Shown here: positions 25,430-36,636 of the stretch, piece by piece
Layout: each line of letters opens with the position of its first letter
How positions within the stretch are numbered: the stretch's first letter is position 1
Assembly (NCBI GenBank): GCA_030704615.1
Contig: CM060734.1
Coordinates: forward strand, 9,486,001 to 9,550,000
Length of the DNA: 64,000 nucleotides
From: Takakia lepidozioides
Lineage: Eukaryota; Plantae; Bryophyta
Direction: 5' to 3'
The notes under the pieces: generated by a model
Seen by the model: only the letters and a program-made list of their open reading frames with translations
Database searches by the model: none
Told to the model about the DNA's origin: nothing
Translations under genes and position numbers: made by a program

Positions 25430-25835
25430 ATGGACGACCTACCCCTCATCTCAACACTATCTCCCACACAGTCACTCACCCTGATAACCAACAATGTCAT
25501 ATCCTCATTGCAGGCGACTTCAACAGAGACATTGCACTATTAGGCCACTCCTACAATGGAGCCCACAAACCCCCATCTTCAGTAGACCTAGAATGGGCCC
25601 GATTTACCCAGCTCCTCCAATTCAAGTACATTCCCGCAGACTACCCCTACTCCAGACAAGGACGTCTTAACTACTCCTCCTTAAGTCTAATTGACGGTTT
25701 CTATCTCAAAACATGTAATGAAATCCCGTCGTACCTACTCAGCCATGTCCACATCAATAGCCTATGCAACTCGGACCACTACCCGATCTCAGTTCACTTC
25801 CCCCCGTCCCTTATCCCATTCCAGCCCGTCCCACA
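25430..25835 (+). pseudogene. LINE APE endonuclease C-terminal fragment (diverged sibling of the 30-36.6 kb element)
   Basis: HILIAGDFNRDI..YSRQGRLNYSSLSLIDGFYL..NSDHYPISV, clearly homologous to 36045-36521 (-). Confidence 0.9.
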
Positions 25836-26926: not shown

Positions 26927-27237
26927 TTGGCTAAGATAGTCAATGCAAACAGAACGGATTGGGATACAAAGCTGCTGACAGCTTTGTGGTCATACAGGAC
27001 TTCATATAAAGTCACCACTAAGTATACACCATTCCAATTAGTTTATGGTATGGAAACTTTACTTCAAGTGAAATTCCTGTTACCTACCATGAGAACGGAA
27101 TGGGGAAAGAGAATGGAATTGCAAGATTCAATTAAGGTCAGGAAACATGAATTATACCATGTGGAAGAAGTACGTGCTGATGCAGCTGATAACATGACCA
27201 GAATTCAGATGAAAAGAAAGGAACAGTTTGATGATAG
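26927..27237 (+). pseudogene. Ty3/gypsy (Tat/Athila-like) integrase C-terminal fragment
   Basis: KIVNANRTDWDTKLLTALWSYRTSYKVTTKYTPFQLVYG..KRKEQFD. Confidence 0.85.
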
Positions 27238-29290
27238 TGCGGGTGTACCTCCCAGCTGTCTCATCTTTCTCTTTGTCCTTCTCCTTGTCCTTCTCTTTCT
27301 CCTTTTCCTTCTCTTTCTCCTTCTCCTTCTCTTTCTCCTTCGACTTCTCTTTCTCCTTTGTCTTCCCAGGTGACTTTGCATCCTTGTCTTTCACCTTGCG
27401 ACCCCCCTTCTTGCCTTTCTGGGGAGTTGCTTGCGCGTCTGGCTCCTTGGCAGCCAATGAAGCTATGTTCCTCTGGTACTCTTCGTCGTTCAAAGGTGCC
27501 AGCATCTCCGCATGGTTGTTCAAATACTTCATTTGCTGCTCTTGAAATGTTGTGTGCTCAGGAGGGCAGTCGAGGTAAGATACCAGCTGTGTACATGGTG
27601 GGATCGTTGGCAGGGTCCGACCACATGTCCAGGTAATCTGGGATTCCACTTAGGTGTTTTCCTTCCATCAGCACATATTTAGTGTACCTGCGGACGCTCA
27701 AACAAACACCATCCCCAAAACATGATATCAAAAAGCAGCGGAAAGTGATGATCGGTGGCGATCATCACTTTCACATTAGAGAGAATGCAACATGGGTGTG
27801 CAAATCCTTATGATTATCTATATTGCACAACTGGGAAATCTGATGATCGGCACCGATCATCAGGTCACTGATCAGAAACAAACTGCCTATGTTAACAGAG
27901 GTAGGATTAAGAATGGAAACATGGATATGCAGTATTCATTTGTTTGACGGGAGAAGATCAGAGCACTGGAAGTGATGATCGGTACCGACCATCACCAAAC
28001 TGTTGTGTAGCAGAAAGAAAATATTAAGCTTTTCTCAACTAAGGCATGACAAAATTTCAAAGAATGTGATGGATAGGCTTTAGGTACTGCACCTGTACAC
28101 AACATGCATCATAGCCCACTCCCCTCCAACTTGACTGTCGAAATCGTTCAACCTCAATATGTTACCATCCTTGGAGAACTCGCGGAAGAAATAGTACCGC
28201 CACGTGAGACCTTTCCACTTTCTAATGTACGCCTCCAAGGTCATCTGTGGTGGTGAGACCATCGAAATATTCAAGTCCTTCAAATTCTGCTCCAGGACAA
28301 GAATGGCACGTTTCTCCAGCTGCAAAGGGAACATCTATCAGAATTGCACATGACAAAGCCATAGGATAATTGATATACAATAGGCACTTCAATCCACAAA
28401 TACTTGACTCCAAAATGTGGCCTTGTGAAGCCAGTGATCAGAAACAATGTCACTTATTCCCTCGACCTTTGTGCCAGGCTGGATTGTGCTTTTTGGGAAC
28501 TGATTCAGATCCGTCACCGTCTGATCCGAGTTCCAAATCTCAAGCCATCTAACTTTTGTCTGGGGGTTGACCATGGAGAGAGCCAGCCTGTGCAATTTCT
28601 CCTGTTGCATCTCTGGATGTACATGCTTGTCATAGTGGGCTTTGATTTGGAGAAGGAACTCCTCCCCAAGTCTGGGATCCACTATTCTCAACTGCTTCAG
28701 GAAGGCGGACATCAGCTTCGTCCTCCTTATCTCGTACTCCTTCTTTATGGCTGCTCCAACACCTTTAGCAGTCCTCAGCTCTTCTGCTGTAGTGCGGTAG
28801 TACTCAGATTTCCCCCTCTCGGCGGCCTCTGCCAGTTCTTGCTGCATATAACAACAATTGGATTAGAACACAAAGGATTACAAATTTGTTTTGAAGAAGA
28901 CAGGAAGATGTGGGTTGGGCCATACCGCATACAAGTACTCCAGAAATGCATCTCGGGTCAACGAGTACAGGTCCCTGTAGCTCTCCCTGTTTCGCACTTC
29001 TTGATTACATCAGGATGTAGCACTGTGCGGAACTCATCAAGCTTCATCAAACCAATTCTCTGAATACAGAAAAAGTGTGTGGACCAAGCTCGTAGTAACA
29101 TGCTATTTCTTTGTCGATCTGCAAACGGGGAATAGACATTGTACAAGTAAGAACTCTTTTACGTTTGGACTTGAAATGCGCACAACATGCAATTTGAAAG
29201 GCAGTGGGGTTTTTAGGATGTCCTACTTGTTCGCGTCATGCATAGCTGTCAGAAGTCTCGCGATGTCGTTCCCAGGATCCAGAACCATTG
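27238..29290 (-). pseudogene. Spliced, degenerate ORF of unknown function (coiled-coil and KE-repeat segments), probably a retroelement accessory gene
   Basis: ORF pieces at 28958-29146, 28389-28847, 28080-28334 and 27152-27649 are separated by intron-like gaps. It lies antisense to the integrase fragment and has a KE repeat at ~27264-27360. Confidence 0.4.
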
Positions 29291-30015
29291 CCTCCACAGC
29301 ACAATCCATCATCATCTCCCCAATACCCTCAATATGTAATGACTACCTTAAGAGCCATCCAGACACAGACATATGCTCACTACTACAACAACTCCATAAC
29401 TTACCTCCTCAACCCCACAAATACCTAGCACCCCCACACTATCTACACAACCTCTATAAATCTCTCAATCTGCTGCAAGCCAAGCCCGGAGAAGTCCATA
29501 GAATACTAGGTGAACACCTGGCACACCCAACTGCAGCCACACAAGAGTTCAATACCATTTTCAACAAATTCCCATTCCTTTCCGAAAATATTCTCAATGC
29601 AACCCTCCAAGCCAAGGCAAGCATTCCAGGTTATCAACCCCCACCCATGACAACACCACCCACCCCCTCACCATGCACACACAACCCCACCAGAGCACCA
29701 CCTCCAGACCCTCCTAGATCCTCTAACCTTCCCCACACCCCCTCCTCACAGAACGCACACTCACTCAACATAATAACTTGGAATGTAGGATCACTTGCCA
29801 CCAGCATTCAGAGCCTCATCAATCTCACAGACTCCACACCCCCGCATATCCTCCTACTACAAGAAACTAAACTTAACACACACAATCCCAGTAGCTCCTA
29901 TATCAACAAACTCCTCCCAGCCTACTATATGCAATATGGCAATTCGTTCACAGCTGCGCAATGCCTCACCAGACGCTCCGCGCCATACCATCCCGCCCGA
30001 GGCGGGGTGTTTACC
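29290..30015 (+). pseudogene. LINE 5' fragment including the APE endonuclease N-terminus
   Basis: LNIITWNVGSL..PHILLLQETKL..ARGGVFTL (APE motifs WNV, LQET, GGV); same C/A-rich coding-strand composition as the main LINE. Confidence 0.85.
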
Positions 30016-30369
30016 TTGGGGGGGCGCGGTTGCGCCATGCCCCAGGCTTTGTTTGTTTTAATCCGGGGAGATGTGGTGGTTATGTTGGTGTGGGGGGTTA
30101 TATCTGGGTAATGGATGGTGGCCTTCATTTTATGAGTTATGGTTAGCAACTGTTCAAGCTGGTGAAAAAAAAATGTCGGTATGTCTGTATGGAGGGGGTG
30201 ATGGACGTGTAGAATCAGAGTTAGGATAGGTTCTTTCCGTTTGAGGTACTTGGGAAGAGGAGGGGTATGAACATATTTAAGCTGATTTGGGTCAATTGTG
30301 GCTCGAGTAGATTGACTCCTGCCGGGAGGCTTAGGAGAGGATGAGAGGTACTAGGTGTGTTTTGTTGTG

Positions 30370-30646
30370 TGAGGATGAGGATTGTGGAGGCATAGGGAGA
30401 AGAGTTAGCTGCAAATCTTGCCCAATGAAGAGCTTCGTGTGTAAGGGGGCCAGAGTGGGGGTGGGCAAAGCCCCTACCCTCCCAGATGTGTTGGGTAGCA
30501 CTACCAGTGGCTCCAAAGATATAGTCTCTGTGATGTAGGCTGGAAAATGTGTGCAAGTCCATAGGACATGTCAGTGGATTGGAGTAATACGATTGAGTGA
30601 GCTGAAATGTGCTGACAAGTAAGGCAAGAATATCTTGGGGTATGGT
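30370..30646 (-). other. PCIF1/CAPAM-like N6-adenine methyltransferase-fold domain within the LINE ORF (catalytic motif degenerate)
   Basis: TIPQDILALLVSTFQLTQSYYSNPLTC..FSS..RDYIFGATG..WEGRGFAHPH..NSSPYASTILIL aligns by eye with the PCIF1 core as recalled: SLP..ALHRLF..FASPLNC..YCS..D.YFGS.G..GSFEANPPF..SSPEPLSFIVFIP. Confidence 0.65.
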
Positions 30647-31120
30647 ATGATGTGCACATGCCGTTTCCAGTCTAGCGAGGGATCGTGGTTTCTTGGGAGG
30701 GGTGTCTTTGAGGTAGCGGTCAACAAACCAATATAATTCGGTAGCAAAGTCTTGTTTTGGAGGTTGTAGGGATTGTGAGTATGCGTTTGTAGCAGAGTAC
30801 TTTTCCCATAGCCATGCTAGTCTATTGTTGGGGATGATCCCAATGAAACGGCCATGTTGAGCGTAGATATTGGAGAGGCGGGGGCCCATGTGAATTAGTG
30901 GTTGGTCATGCTTGACATCTTTGTCAGGGTTGCATTCAGTTATACAGATGTGTACGTTGGGGGCAGAGATCGGTTGGTGGATGTATCGGTTATCTGTAGG
31001 TTGGGTGGGGGTGGTGTGTTGATGATGAATATGTGCTAGGTAATCGGTGTTAGTATGTTTATGGAAGGTGGTGAGAAGGGTAAGATTGTGGTCGGGGTCA
31101 CAATCGTCATGTGGGCCGAA

Positions 31121-31264
31121 TAGATCATCCTTTATCTGCCAGGTGTTGTCTTCTGAGGAAAACCCAGCCCATTTGCAGTGGTAGTATGTATCTATGCAGG
31201 TGGCGCCAAAGGCGTCAATTGATGTTTGGGTTTTGACACCCAGTATAGCTTCGATGATAAAGGC
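31121..31264 (-). other. HP1-like chromodomain within the LINE ORF
   Basis: FIIEAILG...YYHCKWAGFSSEDNTWQIKDDL versus HP1 YVVEKVL...[21 protein letters not shown]. The aromatic cage positions F/W/F are present. Confidence 0.85.
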
Positions 31265-31989
31265 ATTGGTGTCGTCCAAGTTGTGTGGAGAGGGTGGGTG
31301 GGTTTCTGTGGGGATTAGTGGGGAGTGGGTGGGGGGGTCTGGTATATTAGGTGGGGGGGTTAATGCTAGATGGGAGTTGTTGTCAGGTTTGGTATGTTGC
31401 ATACTATGTGTTTGAGAGTGAGTATCGGTTTCTGTGGCTGTGGGGGTGTTAGTGGCATATGTTGTTTTAAGAGTTTGGTAGATGGAGGCAGTTGGGGCAG
31501 ACCGATGTTGGGGGAGCAGGTCTTGAGCCGTATGGGGATAATGGAGACAGGGGAGATCACATTGGAGGGTACATGCTGTTGATGGATGGTAGAAGAGGGT
31601 GCGAAGATGGTGTAGGTAGCGGCTGGTTTTAGTTGTAGCACGAGACAACTTAAGAGTGAATTCACTTGGCTTTAAAAGTCGGTGGCCTGTGATAGTGGTA
31701 AGTTGGGTGAGGGTGGTAATGTGTCGTTCTTTGAAGTAGGTGAGGATGGGGGTTTTTTGTTTTGGATGAGAGATGTCAAATTGTGATAAGAAAAGGCTTG
31801 TGAGCCATGCACATTCTAATGGTGACGAGGTGTTAGGATAATTTGGCAGGTCGGTTTGTATCCAAATTTTCATTTGGCATAGGATGAGTGTGCGTGCAGT
31901 GGGGGAGTATAAACAGACCTGAGGGTGCAAGGATGATAGTGAATACATGCCATTGTATTTTAAGGCAAGGTGTTTAAGGAGTCCCTGTT

Positions 31990-33818
31990 TAGAGGGCTGT
32001 CTGGGACGTAGACACTTTTATGGGTTCTATGGGGTACCCTTAATTTTTGCGCAGACTTACGGATGGTAGACTTAGATCAACAGAGGCCTTAGGGGTGACA
32101 GGCACAGGCTTACACACTCAGTCACAGTCGTATACAGCCTATCATAGTCTATCACAGCCATACACAGCCTTACACAACCCGACACAACCTTACACAGTCT
32201 GTCACAGTCAATCACAGCCTATCACAGTTAGTCACAGTCTATCACAGCTCGACACAGTCCGACATAGCCAGTCACAGCTCGGTACAGTCACAGCCCAACA
32301 CAGTTTGGCACAACCTGTCACAGCGTATATAAGAAACGGTTATCATTGGCAGGGAATGACTGTGTGGGAACGACATCTGCAGAGGGAATGTGTTTACTTC
32401 TTAGGTGACAGTTAGGTAGTTAGGCGGTTAGAACAGCTTGTAGATAAAATATGCAGAGCAAGCATCATAGAGGACACTTCAGCGGGAGCACTTCTTGGTC
32501 ATGCACGGGAGGAGATCAGGTGGAGAGCAAGGATGGAGAGCACGGTGAAGGAGAAGAGATGAACAGTAGATGCTCGTTACATGCAAAGCTGTAGTGATAT
32601 TGTAGAGCAGATTAGAGACACCATGGCTTCGGCTTGATACCTGATAAATCTTAATCTGATACTTATTCGATACAATCACACTGTGTAGAGAGACTTGAGT
32701 GAAGCTGTGGAATGAATGGATGAGTGAATGGAACCTGATAGATACTGAAGCAATCTGATGCTTCAGTATACACAATAAGGTAATTTGCTAACATGAAGGC
32801 AAGAAGAAATACAAACAGGAAGCACAACCAAGATTCACTAGCTGTAGGTCATGGCTGATTGTTCTCAGCCGGCTGAGTGCTTAGAGATATCCAACTCTTC
32901 TATCTTGGAATTTTCGCCTCGGATAGCAAAGGGATGGGTGAGTAAAAGCCGCTCGACATTTGGCGACTCCTCCCAGCCTTCAAACTCCACTTGTTTAATG
33001 GATAGCAATGCTATCACATAAACCAGCGTTGGTAACCAACTTGCTCTCCATCTACAAGCCACTTGATAAATCTTTATCACTCATTTCTCCAGACCCCACT
33101 CGGGATCTGCATCATGCACTCTCTTAAGAATGTTTTCCTTGCAACCGTCTGGCAATTCCAAAAATCTCTGAAAGAATTGCTTGGACAACCTTTCTTTCTC
33201 AGTTCCACAAGGAATTTGATTCACATCAAATTCTCTAATTCTCCAACCACCAGGATCCCACCAGATGCCTGTCACATCTGGTTGTTCTTGACCCAGTTCC
33301 CCAACGGAAAGTGAATGTTTACACTCATATGCATGAAGAGTTGGTACTAGTAATTGGATTCCTAAGGATATCTTGTGGATCAAACTGACACCAAGAACAG
33401 CTTTTCAGACGTGCTTGCCATATGGTTATATGGTAACAGAGACTTCTAGTATAGCCAAGGGTGCATTGAAGCTTGAAAGAAACCCAGGCATATACGAGAG
33501 ATACTACAGAAGAGAGTTTTGGTTATTGTCTCATTGAAGATATGAAAGACATGGGACATGAGTGATGAAAGAGAAGCTAGACTTCACAGATATTCAGCAA
33601 AAAGATAAAGTTATTTGAAAGCTAATTATCCATATCTTTGGGAGAGAAGAATAGACATAGGAGAATCATCTGGACCTCTCACACCATTAAGATCGAAGAG
33701 TACATCACCCATACCGGAGGAACCAGAGTTGGATGCCACTCCTTCTTATTCTTTACAAGAAAAATTAAGGATACCCCACAAAACCCATAAAAGTGTCTAC
33801 GTCCCAGACAGCCCTCTA
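31990..33818. mobile_element. Non-autonomous TIR element (hAT-like TAG...CTA ends, 59-bp TIRs) carrying LTR-retroelement-like cargo, inserted in the LINE
   Basis: 31990-32048 and 33760-33818 are inverted repeats with 3 mismatches. The LINE frame (..GIIYQGL / QGLLKHLALKYNG..) resumes on the other side. No clean 8-bp TSD. Confidence 0.8.
32110..32325. repeat. Degenerate 10-bp tandem repeat ((T/A)CACAG(T/C)CNN)
   Basis: About 20 consecutive units, e.g. tcacagtcta tcacagctcg acacagtccg. Confidence 0.85.
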
Positions 33819-36582
33819 CCAATCCCTGATAAATGATACCGAGACGCCCAGGGTCGTTGAGTGCTTCTTTTAATTGTGTGCCTAATGTCCTGGCATATGA
33901 GATGATTAGTGGGCTAGAACCAATTCCGTAGCTGTCAGTTGGGAGTTGTGTGAGGGCATTAGGGTACTAATTGGTAGTCCACATACACGTTTAGTAAGAT
34001 GAATAATACTTTTATCCAATTTTTTGACGTCTGGTAAGGAGAAGGGTGCGGCGTGGAACGAGTATTGAATTTGTGTTTGTAATACTGATTTAATGATTGA
34101 TAGTTTGGGCCGGATAGCAATTGGGGATTTGAGCAGGGCTAAGCTTTGGGTAGCGAGTTTGGACGACGTAGATTCTTTCTGGATGTGCCAACTGAGGGAA
34201 GGTACTAGTTGGATACCTAGGTAAGTGTATGGTTCATCTGGTCCGAAAAAGGGGAAGGGTGTGTTTTGGTATCCTTGCACATAAACCACAACACCTAAAC
34301 CGACAAGTCACCAAACTATCCAGATTCAATCTATGGTCAGGTATGGAGCTCAGCCTACACAAGTGCGTTACCACAGCCGCAACACATCAAAGCCGGCTCA
34401 CTAAAATAGCCATGGCTTCCCATTGTAAACTCTACGTACACGAGATCATCTGCATATGCTGCGGCTGATATGTCGCTGGAGGAGGTTTTGTATTGATACC
34501 CGAGCTTACCACAGGCGAGCCATCTGAATAGGGGTTCTAGGAAGATAATGAATAGGTAGGTACTTAAGGTATCACCTTGGATAGTGCCTCGAAGAATGGG
34601 GATAGGTGGGGTGGAGCCATAGTATGCACCAAAATATTCGGTGGTGCTGTTTGTGTATATGTTTCCTATGAGTTGAACAACATCAGTGGGGTATCCAAGA
34701 TCAAGCATGATGGATAGTAATCTAGCATGGTCTAGGGAGCCGAAGGCATTTTTAAAGTCGATGTATAATAGATATATGTCTTGCTTTGTAAGTTTGGCGT
34801 CTTCGAGGGTGGATAGAACATATTGGATTTGTCGAGTTGTACTGCGTGTGGCACGAAATCCTTCTTGTAGGTTGTTGAGAATTTGGTGTTGTTCGTCGTA
34901 GCTTGACAACATTGTAGTGAGCGTGCTGGTGAATAACTTGTATATGGTGTTGGCCAATGCAATGGGTCTGTAATTGTTGAGATCCGTAGGGTCACCTTTT
35001 TTAAAGAGTAAGATGGTACGGCTATGTTTCAGTGTGGTATACGTTGCAGTTTATAACATAGTTGGAAAAATTTGTAGAGAAGGTGATGAAGTTGAGGGTC
35101 CAATGCTTGAAGTATGGCATTTGGTATAAGATCAGGGCCTGGGGCTTTGGATTTAGATCATTCCTTAAGACATGATTCGTATAGATCAATTGTGAATAGG
35201 TCTAGAATGCGATCTCTCGGGGAACCCCTGTTGTCTATTGAGAAGCCGTCTATATCATGCCATGGGTAGTGTTTAACTTTACACATGCAGTTGGCAGGAT
35301 GGAGATTGGGATGTAAACCGTTTGTAACTGTGGGCATGTAGGTTGAGGATGCTTGTGACCATATTTCTTGGTTGATGTCCATTGGGTTGGTTAGCAGGTG
35401 GCCAAGCCGGTGTTTGAGACAATCGATGGGTGGGTTGAGGGTAGGGTTGAAAATGGCTTTGTGAGCTTTTTTTGGGTGATTGTGTAGTAGCTGGTTAAAG
35501 GAGGAGATAAATTTTTTGTGGTTGGCGGTAGCTTTTTGTTTGGTGATACTGTAAGTGGTTTTCTTAGCATCTCTCCCAAGTTTGGAGAGAGTGGCTATCT
35601 AGTTAGGAATGTTGTGAGGGTTGTCAAGTGGGGGCATAAGTGCTTGGCATGGTGTTAGGGTATTGAGGCAGGTGATACGGGGATCCGTTGTCCAGTTATT
35701 CCCTAGGTGTATGGAGGTGGTGGTAGGTATAATAGTGAGGGCGCGTCTAATCGTGTGGTATGTGTTGAGGTGTGATGTCCACGTACGTTTCTGTGTGCGA
35801 GTAAGGTAGCCCCCATTTTGTTTTGAACGTGCAGTTTGCGGAATCTTGGGGGGGGGGGGGGGGGGGGCAGGTGGCAATGACGTTTTTGGTCATCTTGCAT
35901 TAATTTTGTGAGTATGATCTCGGATTCGGTCCAGGTTTGATCCGGGGATTGCGTGAGGTTTGCATCTGTGAGTATGTCTAATAGTTTTAGCATAAGGTGT
36001 GAGGATGTTGGTTGGAATTTTCTTAGAAAGTCGGCTATGTTTCGTTAGGGGAGTGGGGATAAGATTCTGGATTGAGGTGATGGGACATGTACGGGTGGTA
36101 TAGGTCTAAAGGGGATGAGGGATGGTGGGATGGTTACAGAGACAGGGTAGTGATCCGAGTTGCATAGGCTATTAATATGTACATGACTGTTAAGGTACGT
36201 TGGGATCTCATTTTCCATTTTTAGGTAGAAACCGTCGAGAAGGCTTAGGGAGGAGTAGTTGAGTCCACCTTGTCTAGAGTAGTGGTGGTTGGCGGGTATG
36301 TAACGGAGGTGGTGTGTTTGAGTAAATTTTTCCCACTCGTGGTCTACTGAGGATGGAGCTTTATGTATACCATTGTATGTGTGGCCCATGAGGGCAATGT
36401 CTCTGTTAAAGTCGCCTGCTAGGATATAGTGCTGAGAGTGGGTCGAGGGTTGGTTGAGTGTGTTGGATATGGTGAGTAGAATATCCGGGATCAGCGGGAG
36501 ATCATCAGTGTGTGAGGGCATGTATAAGTGTATAAGGATAATAGGGGGGAGCGCGGGGAGGTGTATTTTGATGATTTGAAGG

Positions 36583-36636
36583 TGGGCAAATCACACACAG
36601 CAGATTGATGCTTGTGTGAAGGGATTTCTAGAGGAT
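36583..36636 (+). repeat. Right copy of the direct duplication bounding the TE mosaic
   Basis: TGGGCAAATCACACACAGCAGATTGATGCTTGTGTGAAGGGATTTCTAGAGGAT; abuts the 5' truncation point of the LINE. Confidence 0.85.

Follow-up and report, generated by a model that had tools for sequence, protein, structure and literature searches.

The open frame and the LINE remnants around it

The window (the whole 64-kb stretch of DNA that was analysed) carries on its minus strand an ORF of 575 aa (31948-30221), nested in an open frame of 598 codons (32017-30224). All of the features that a preliminary description of this DNA had named were recovered in place on this strand. The N-terminal part of the frame is a C-terminal extension of a reverse transcriptase (RT) (31547..31987, minus strand), which ends at a Cys/His cluster, CTLQCDLPCLH (31573-31541, minus strand); the latter contains a conserved CxxxCxxPC motif and was aligned with the relative L001. 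It is followed by a chromodomain (31121..31264, minus strand) and by a PCIF1/CAPAM-like Rossmann methyltransferase core (about 30326..30898, minus strand), within which the block running from TIPQDIL to TILIL was mapped by its motif positions to 30646-30371 (minus strand). A linker continues the polyprotein in another frame (30018..30374, minus strand; 33% identity to aa 138-248 of P0160, tblastn E 1e-7). The element ends at this linker; its counterpart in the relatives is followed by RNase H.

The length of the 598-codon frame exceeds what base composition permits. The longest open frame found in 2000 shuffles was of 279 codons, and the probability of obtaining 598 by chance, calculated from the stop frequency, is ~2e-10. 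The coding strand is poor in G (12% G), which lowers the frequency of stop codons on it.

Upstream of the frame we identified the remains of a LINE. The C-terminal two thirds of an APE-type endonuclease (35895..36584, minus strand; equivalent to aa 272-496 of the L001 APE; tblastn 35% identity, E 2.8e-33) are interrupted by a stop codon, as revealed by a three-frame map. The RT, with its N-terminal extension and thumb (33819..35835, minus strand; Pfam RVT_1 E 2.3e-16 on 34957-34355), is broken, according to the frame map, by at least two frameshifts, a stop codon and a micro-inversion, and its tblastn HSPs with the L001 RT (identity up to 69%) lie in differing frames. The micro-inversion, of ~140 bp (34265..34402, plus strand), affects the segment after YADD (aa 374-419 of the L001 RT; BLASTP 48% identity over 46 aa, E 2e-15, and tblastn), and one of its edges is spanned by a short-read unitig (34325-34505).

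The preliminary description had placed the open frame downstream of the APE and RT. This order is correct, but a transposon of 1.8 kb separates the RT from the frame. It is a non-autonomous TIR element inserted within ORF2 (31988..33820, no strand assigned), with 59-bp TIRs starting with TAGAG (33760-33818 and 32048-31990; 94.9% in an inverted-repeat comparison) and with an 8-bp target duplication on its flanks, CAGGGATT on one side (33828-33821) and CAGGGACT on the other (31987-31980). The ATG of the 575-aa ORF sits just after this insertion. Read depth within the transposon (1e4 to 7e5, vs about 100-2000 in the flanking LINE) identifies it as a member of a very high-copy family. In a tblastn comparison, the intact L001 RT aligns on both sides of the insertion, with aa 538-586 at 33963-33817 and aa 583-730 at 31987-31547. 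If the transposon and one of the two 8-bp repeats are set aside, the RT and the 598-codon frame are in register. The two are thus a single protein, split by the TIR insertion.

The 5' region of the element, with the N-terminal part of the APE (aa 36-246 of the L001 APE), was found in inverted orientation (29335..30009, plus strand; tblastn E 4.5e-20, Pfam Exo_endo_phos E 1.4e-4). It adjoins the 3' break of the element and complements the APE piece at 36584-35895; the junction is spanned with zero differences by a short-read unitig (29898-30061). Two simple origins of this arrangement were rejected: in the case of twin priming the junction joins the wrong ends, and a simple inversion predicts that RNase H and RLE lie past 36590 in plus orientation, where neither is present. 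Neither of them was found anywhere else in the 64-kb window. A further APE fragment (25450..25815, plus strand; blastn 75% identity to 36109-36419, tblastn E 2.4e-23) comes from another, older member of the family. With its frameshifts, its inversions and its lack of RNase H and RLE, the window copy is a dead, rearranged fossil without a function of its own. The persistence of an intact 598-codon frame beside 2.8 kb of adjoining sequence with at least six disruptions (counted on the frame map) is slightly unexpected in a copy that is dead.

Chromodomain and PCIF1-like module

The chromodomain, which starts with AFIIEAILG at 31264, was recognised by the Pfam Chromo profile (E 1.6e-4) at 22.0 bits, which falls slightly short of the cut-off (25.1); in the relative P0001 the same profile reaches 36.6 bits and exceeds the cut-off. 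All 32 matches obtained with phmmer against the PDB were chromodomains (the best at 2.8e-4), and together with the score of P0001 they substantiate the chromodomain proposed in the preliminary description. The aromatic-cage positions, as read from the family alignment (A3), are occupied by F, W and F (AFIIE.. and KWAGF), which align with the Y, W and Y of the cage of HP1-type chromodomains. In most relatives the chromodomain is divergent and has longer loops, and in one distant lineage a PHD finger takes its place.

As for the PCIF1-like module, the window sequence scores below the cut-off of the Pfam PCIF1_WW profile (E 3.8e-4, 20.5 bits vs 31.1), which three relatives exceed, namely P0002 (31.2), P0007 (32.8) and P0120 (35.9). 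A single-sequence search of this part against the PDB gave zero matches, and a family profile found 6IRX at E 4.6e-4. The first family profile (A1) was topped by spurious WD40 matches to a “DG..LW” stretch, and the alignment was trimmed (A2). In the AlphaFold model of the module the core has a pLDDT of 85-95. The top six Foldseek matches were all CAPAM (E 3.9e-7 to 3.2e-5, with a probability of 1.00 for the best; next match 0.04), and VIA-align to CAPAM gave Z scores of 12-12.8 over 181-186 residues (next Z 5.7). The structural match is limited to human residues 416-617, and the helical cap-binding domain is absent. The Atlas comparison gave a TM of 0.60 to chordate PCIF1, and all 30 Atlas feature matches were to PCIF1_WW. 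The PDB profile, Foldseek, Z scores and Atlas features are four lines of evidence that bear out the proposed PCIF1/CAPAM-like fold, and the modelled module has the fold of a CAPAM-type methyltransferase domain.

The motifs of the module were examined individually. Motif I (YYSNPLTC, 30589-30566) and the D..FG stretch (RDYIFGATG, 30529-30503) are present, and motif IV is degenerate (GFAHPHS, 30472-30452), with AHPHS (30466-30452) at the place where PCIF1 reads NPPF. The His of this motif directly follows strand beta-4 in the AlphaFold model. At the Asn position, 76 of the 95 family members (80%) have His and four have Asn, and the His-Pro pair is kept in 76 and 72 of the 95, respectively; in a few distant relatives NPEY and FASPLN are found. 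His is not known to occupy the Asn position of motif IV in any N6-adenine methyltransferase. A WW domain gave no Pfam match in the window.

These observations bear on the suggestion that the two domains form a true reader-writer pair, in which the PCIF1-like module, with His in place of Asn, would be catalytically active and, with SAM as its donor, methylate the RNA cap or cDNA of the element or the target site, in concert with the chromodomain. The specifically CAPAM-like fold and the retention of SPL and D..FG speak for such activity, the conservation of His-Pro argues for selection, and the distant relatives with NPEY or FASPLN look catalytically plausible. However, PCIF1 requires both N553 and F556, whose mutation inactivates it and both of which are replaced in AHPHS, and it binds the cap via the helical domain that is missing here (PMC10544176). 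In fly PCIF1 the F-to-H change alone is accompanied by the absence of m6Am (PMC9479742), and the related modules of DIRS1 have been judged inactive (PMC4738411). The “writer” half of the preliminary description is therefore weak, because NPPF is altered, Asn is exchanged for His in most of the family and the cap-binding helical domain is lacking, and we regard an active pair as unlikely.

The module retains SAM-pocket-like motifs (the SPL loop and D..FG) and is probably not a canonical cap m6Am writer. The presence of His-Pro instead of Asn-Pro-Pro-Phe, together with the missing helical cap-binding and WW domains, suggests that it most likely serves as a conserved nucleic-acid- or cofactor-binding part of the RNP, presumably in a non-catalytic role, or that it has an altered chemistry. 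Against a non-catalytic role, the strongly conserved His and the conserved SAM-type motifs fit a selected, possibly enzymatic function.

Relatives and the origin of the window copy

The pieces of the element were searched separately, each as it stands in the window, rather than in a joined or mended version. An exhaustive search revealed 215 relatives at E<1e-3, including 82 at E<1e-10. RNase_H lies 3' of the PCIF1-like module in P0006, P0011, P0120, P0140, P0148 and P0150 (Pfam E down to 1.4e-17), and in L001 and L006 RVT_1 is preceded by Exo_endo_phos. In L006 the APE, RT, PCIF1-like module, RNase H and RLE are found on one strand, and L011 has the RT, then the PCIF1-like module, then RNase H. 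Within the RLE region of the relatives the CCHC, RH, PD and E positions do not vary. A phmmer search of this region against the PDB gave zero matches, and in a fold search its model matched only R2 proteins (E 1.8e-8 to 6e-5). The family RT is also closer to that of R2 (2.6e-32) than to L1 ORF2p (1.2e-19). The preliminary description had asked whether RNase H and a restriction-like endonuclease follow: both do so in the relatives, and the window copy is devoid of either. Its guess that the element is Dualen/RandI-like fits these findings, since the relatives have an APE and an R2-type RLE, with RNase H after the PCIF1-like module.

In the sources, the family proteins carry only the labels “ribonuclease HI” or “hypothetical”. 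L001-L005 and L006-L010 were considered as possible multiple insertions and rejected, each set being one locus across samples, with 96-100% identity through the flanks. A protein homologue search with residues 240-598 returned nothing at E<=1e-5, a result which, given the length and word limits of that search, says nothing on absence.

Quite probably, the locus is a defunct Dualen/RandI-type non-LTR element in rearranged form, carrying a chromodomain and a PCIF1-like module that is probably not a writer. The placement in Dualen is drawn from relatives of 25-45% identity originating from metagenomes, the RNase H and RLE lying outside the window, and should be read as a probable assignment. The family polyprotein has the order APE, RT, Cys cluster, chromodomain, PCIF1-like module, RNase H, CCHC and R2-type RLE, of which the window keeps the middle part, from the C-terminal part of the APE to the PCIF1-like module, the RNase H and RLE having been lost.

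Co-option of the 575-aa ORF as a host gene, kept open by selection amid the decay of its surroundings, is very unlikely. The contrast between the 598 open codons (vs the shuffle maximum of 279) and the at least six disruptions in the neighbouring 2.8 kb would agree with such domestication, as would the start of the ORF right after the insertion. However, the frameshift at about 30370 breaks the frame within the tail of the conserved module, the read depth points to several nearly identical copies and not to a gene present once, and the low G content of the coding strand by itself makes stops rarer. Moreover, no RNA run contains the stretch, although this is not proof of silence. A one-off chimera, in which nested insertions brought an unrelated chromodomain/PCIF1-like fragment beside a LINE fragment, can hardly explain the locus: the rearrangement is indeed heavy (a TIR insertion exactly between the RT and the frame, an inverted 5' part and a micro-inversion), but homology to the RT of a single relative continues past the insertion and into the open frame, the reading frames match when the insertion and one duplication copy are left out, and the divergent L006, L011 and L012, as well as many fragments, share the domain order downstream of the RT at 25-45% identity.

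Comparison with known elements and implications

Dualen/RandI LINEs were reportedly described by Kojima and Fujiwara in 2005. The relatives L006, P0160, P0168 and P0150 resemble them in having a single polyprotein with an N-terminal APE, RNase H after the RT and a C-terminal CCHC and RLE, and their RT is more similar to that of R2 than to that of L1. The window differs in that its host is apparently a land plant, not an alga, and in that its copy is without RNase H and RLE. One member of the clade, Dualen-4b_cRei, is active in Chlamydomonas (PMC9977147), and a SET methyltransferase has been found in a Dualen of a cryptophyte (PMC5029228); accessory chromatin domains are therefore known in this clade. 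In the searchable literature we found no description of PCIF1 in a LINE, a retrotransposon or Dualen, of a chromodomain in a non-LTR element, or of a Dualen with either of the two between the RT and RNase H.

PCIF1-clade domains in retroelements have, as such, already been noted in DIRS1, whose methyltransferase domain was judged inactive on account of substitutions at catalytic positions, a non-catalytic, RNA-binding or mimicry role being proposed for it (Iyer, Zhang and Aravind 2016, PMC4738411). Compared by description, both modules are PCIF1-clade domains within a retroelement polyprotein and have changed catalytic residues. The elements themselves are different: DIRS1 has a tyrosine recombinase, an LTR-type RT and the methyltransferase after RNase H, whereas the element described here is a target-primed LINE with the module before RNase H. 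With PCIF1/CAPAM itself (PDB 6IRV-6IS0) the window module shares the Rossmann fold, (F/Y)(A/S)SPL, D..FGS and the position of the strand-4 loop, but it is devoid of the WW and helical cap-binding domains, has AHP(x)(x) for NPPF and is part of a retrotransposon polyprotein. The small PCIF1_WW proteins of giant viruses and phages (ESM Atlas clusters) are similar in size and fold, these being the terms of the comparison (modules of ~260-330 aa, TM 0.57/0.58, feature score 0.93), but are free-standing viral proteins.

The closest parallel for the chromodomain is found in the chromoviruses (Ty3/gypsy), which likewise have a retroelement chromodomain with an aromatic cage, through which integration should be directed to methylated histone tails. 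There it is located at the integrase C-terminus, whereas here it forms part of a LINE ORF2-type protein, between the RT and the PCIF1-like module. By analogy with the chromovirus integrases, the chromodomain of live members would presumably tether the integration complex to chromatin marked by methyl-lysine.

A LINE is commonly regarded as limited to the functions that target-primed reverse transcription requires. Our analysis indicates that an old LINE clade has retained, over deep divergence, a reader of histone marks along with a module that derives from the mRNA-cap adenosine methyltransferase. It is improbable that this module, in its His-Pro variant, functions and is selected as an enzyme or as an RNA/cap-binding factor that depends on SAM, being conserved in Dualen from GC-rich algal-type genomes to land plants and forming a reader-writer pair with the chromodomain; if true, this would be the first epigenetic/epitranscriptomic reader-writer pair owned by a target-primed retrotransposon. 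After DIRS1, the element would represent a second class of retroelements to recruit a PCIF1-clade domain and then alter its catalytic residues, which points to a recurrent use of the PCIF1 fold independent of canonical catalysis. Its chromodomain would be, as far as the searchable literature goes, the first described in a non-LTR element, and the idea of “safe-haven” targeting in the style of chromoviruses would thereby extend to target-primed elements.

The open frame and the inserted transposon

We confirmed that one minus-strand frame encodes a Cys cluster, a chromodomain and a PCIF1-like block, as the preliminary description had claimed. The cluster CTLQCDLPCLH (31573-31541), the chromodomain (31264 to ~31121) and the block from TIPQDIL to TILIL (30646-30371) were all found where expected, in an ORF of 575 aa (31948-30221) placed inside an open frame of 598 codons (32017-30224) in the frame map. 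The length of this frame is far beyond expectation from composition (the maximum in 2000 shuffles of the same composition was 279 codons), notwithstanding the strongly G-poor and C-rich coding strand (12% G and 35% C in the ORF). At window positions 30000-32000 and 34000-36000, which show this bias, the plus-strand GC skew reaches 0.49; as a result, the proteins of the element are rich in T, H, P, S, L, N and Q. The Pfam matches of the frame (Chromo, E 1.6e-4; PCIF1_WW, E 3.8e-4) are each below the curated cut-off, and upstream of it lie RVT_1 (E 2.3e-16) and APE-type endonuclease matches.

The reverse transcriptase (RT) is separated from the open frame by a bias-free stretch of 1.8 kb (33906 to 32017). 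Inverted repeats of 59 bp starting with TAGAG (33760-33818 and 32048-31990, 94.9% identity) bound an insertion with an 8-bp direct repeat at its edges (CAGGGATT and CAGGGACT). The insert (31988-33820) is a non-autonomous TIR transposon whose target duplication is of the hAT-like type; neither it nor the flanks show the strand bias of the LINE. Its interior contains an imperfect direct repeat (32103-32248 and 32183-32324). The read depth of the insertion (1e4 to 7e5) exceeds that of the LINE around it (~100-2000, with exact single unitigs at ~90) 100- to 1000-fold, which indicates a very high-copy, MITE-like family in the genome. Judging from the same depth data, the LINE itself probably has several near-identical genomic copies.

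The RT of L001, an intact relative, aligns on either side of the insertion (aa 538-586 end at 33817, aa 583-730 start at 31987), and homology is therefore uninterrupted across it. The flanking reading frames come into register when the insertion is left out of account together with one copy of the duplication. Read from these alignments, the RT and the 598-codon frame are a single protein.

Relatives and the Dualen/RandI assignment

When the 598-aa frame served as query in an exhaustive HMMER search, 215 relatives matched at E<1e-3, 82 of them at E<1e-10; the relatives are mostly short fragments, taken from metagenome and Logan contigs. The Pfam cut-off for PCIF1_WW is reached by the proteins P0002, P0007 and P0120, and RNase_H lies downstream of this domain in P0006, P0011, P0120, P0140, P0148 and P0150. 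On a single strand, locus L006 carries an APE endonuclease, RT, a chromo-like region, the PCIF1-like module, RNase H and a C-terminal domain; L012 contains the last three of these, and in L011 (61% GC) an RVT_1 ORF is followed by P0150, with PCIF1_WW and RNase_H. The module thus also lies downstream of RT in L006 and L011, which argues against a one-off chimera. Since L001-L005 are one locus across samples, and L006-L010 likewise, this argument is based on domain order kept across divergent lineages, not on copy number.

The C-terminal domain of the relatives has invariant CCHC, RH, PD and E positions, and the structural matches to its model are confined to proteins of R2 retrotransposons (E 1.8e-8 to 6e-5), with viral cap-snatching nucleases next at ~1e-2. 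Dualen/RandI elements are defined by an APE plus a restriction-like endonuclease (RLE) in one element (PMC9977147; PMC5029228). The earlier guess of a Dualen/RandI-like element is supported by the APE and R2-type RLE of the relatives and by the family RT, which is nearer to R2 (2.6e-32) than to L1 ORF2p (1.2e-19), in agreement with the reported position of Dualen near RLE clades (PMC4640811).

The metagenome locus represented by L001 (3749-10940) and L002-L005 has, on one strand, ORFs for APE (546 aa) and RT (803 aa), both intact; an ORF of 749 aa (PCIF1-like, RNase H, RLE), likewise intact, converges on them from the opposite strand. A TA-type microsatellite is present at the end of its RT ORF, right where the chromodomain would begin.

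In the literature searched (the original Dualen paper excepted), no non-LTR element, Dualen included, was found to be described as carrying either a chromodomain or a PCIF1-like module. A preprint on retrotransposon adenine methyltransferases (10.64898/2026.05.21.726589) is about prokaryotic Dam-type domains, with no mention of PCIF1. The locus is the fossil of an apparently undescribed variant within a known LINE clade.

Decay and rearrangement of the window copy

The window copy is dead, with a stop and several frameshifts in APE and RT in the frame map. Past the ORF stop, homology to aa 138-248 of the relative P0160 resumes in another frame and continues to 30018, where the minus-strand element breaks. 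By homology to the L001 protein, APE aa 272-496 occupy 36584-35895 (minus), and the N-terminal part, aa 36-246, adjoins the break on the plus strand (29335-30009). Both twin priming and a single inversion were rejected as the origin of this inverted 5' part (29335-30018 versus 35895-36584), as RNase H and RLE are absent from both sides; RNase H and a second endonuclease were sought across the whole window and none was found. An inverted element half was seen twice in the family, in the window copy and in L001.

Within RT, a segment after YADD lies on the opposite strand (34265-34402, corresponding to L001 RT aa 374-419, E 2e-15); this ~140-bp segment, inverted in place, has no clear inverted repeats at its edges. 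Short-read unitigs, from runs that may share the assembly's own sample, cross the ~30010 junction and one micro-inversion edge, and the rearrangements are therefore not obvious assembly artefacts.

Nested repeats surround a further APE fragment (25450-25815, plus; 75% nucleotide identity to 36109-36419), which belongs to a second family copy that is more diverged. By eye, the plus-strand ORF at 26927-27373 resembles the C-terminal portion of an integrase from an LTR retrotransposon; a long low-complexity run rich in CT/GA comes after it.

The chromodomain and the PCIF1-like module

All 32 PDB matches of the 81-aa window segment are chromodomains (best E 2.8e-4), among them Chp1, CBX1/3/5, CDY and MPP8, and the family profile likewise matched chromodomains only. 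The relative P0001 exceeds the Pfam Chromo cut-off (36.6 bits). The canonical W-x-G-(F/Y) cage arrangement is found in the window, P0001 and P0130; the loop is longer and divergent in other subfamilies. In P0150, from the GC-rich and distant L011, aa 463-510 between RT and the PCIF1-like module weakly match a PHD finger (E 0.015), a lead suggesting that a different histone reader may occupy the chromodomain slot.

The proposed PCIF1/CAPAM-like fold was borne out. The family profile matches 6IRX (E 4.6e-4), with the RY helix, (F/Y)(A/S)SPL and D..FGS aligned. With 21 aligned sequences as input, AlphaFold gave a model of mean pLDDT 75 (core 85-95), whose best six Foldseek matches are human or zebrafish CAPAM (E 3.9e-7 to 3.2e-5), followed by generic Rossmann methyltransferases from E 0.04. 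VIA-align superposed 181-186 residues on CAPAM (Z 12.0-12.8, rmsd 3.7-4.0; runner-up Z 5.7), model residues 42-251 corresponding to human 416-617. In the ESM Atlas, chordate PCIF1 matched with TM 0.60 and small PCIF1_WW proteins of giant viruses with TM 0.57, and 30/30 feature-space neighbours were PCIF1_WW clusters.

Of the suggested reader-writer element, the putative reader, the chromodomain, was identified, and the idea of a writer is weakened. Unlike PCIF1, the module consists of the methyltransferase domain only, with neither the WW domain nor the helical domain through which PCIF1 binds m7G caps (PMC10544176). The catalytic NPPF of PCIF1 is replaced, in the loop that follows strand 4, by AHPHS in the window copy. 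Of 95 family members, 76 have His and 4 have Asn at the Asn position, and 72 have Pro at the residue after it. PCIF1 is inactivated by mutation of N553 and F556 (PMC10544176), and in fly PCIF1 a change of F to H accompanies the absence of m6Am (PMC9479742). Given the His for Asn in most of the family and AHPHS in the window, the module is a conserved PCIF1 derivative with an active site altered rather than decayed, and is unlikely to be a canonical cap m6Am writer. Iyer, Zhang and Aravind came to a similar conclusion about the PCIF1-clade domains of DIRS1 (PMC4738411). Three distant relatives, P0120 (with RNase H downstream), P0106 and P0137, retain FASPLN and an NPEY loop, and are candidates for catalytically competent versions, with Asn and the aromatic residue kept.

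Within the RNP, the most likely role of the module is binding, be it of the element's RNA, of a nucleotide or of a cofactor; catalysis of a non-canonical transfer is less likely. By analogy with chromoviruses, the chromodomain of live members would tether the APE/RLE-RT complex to chromatin marked by methyl-lysine and so bias insertion.
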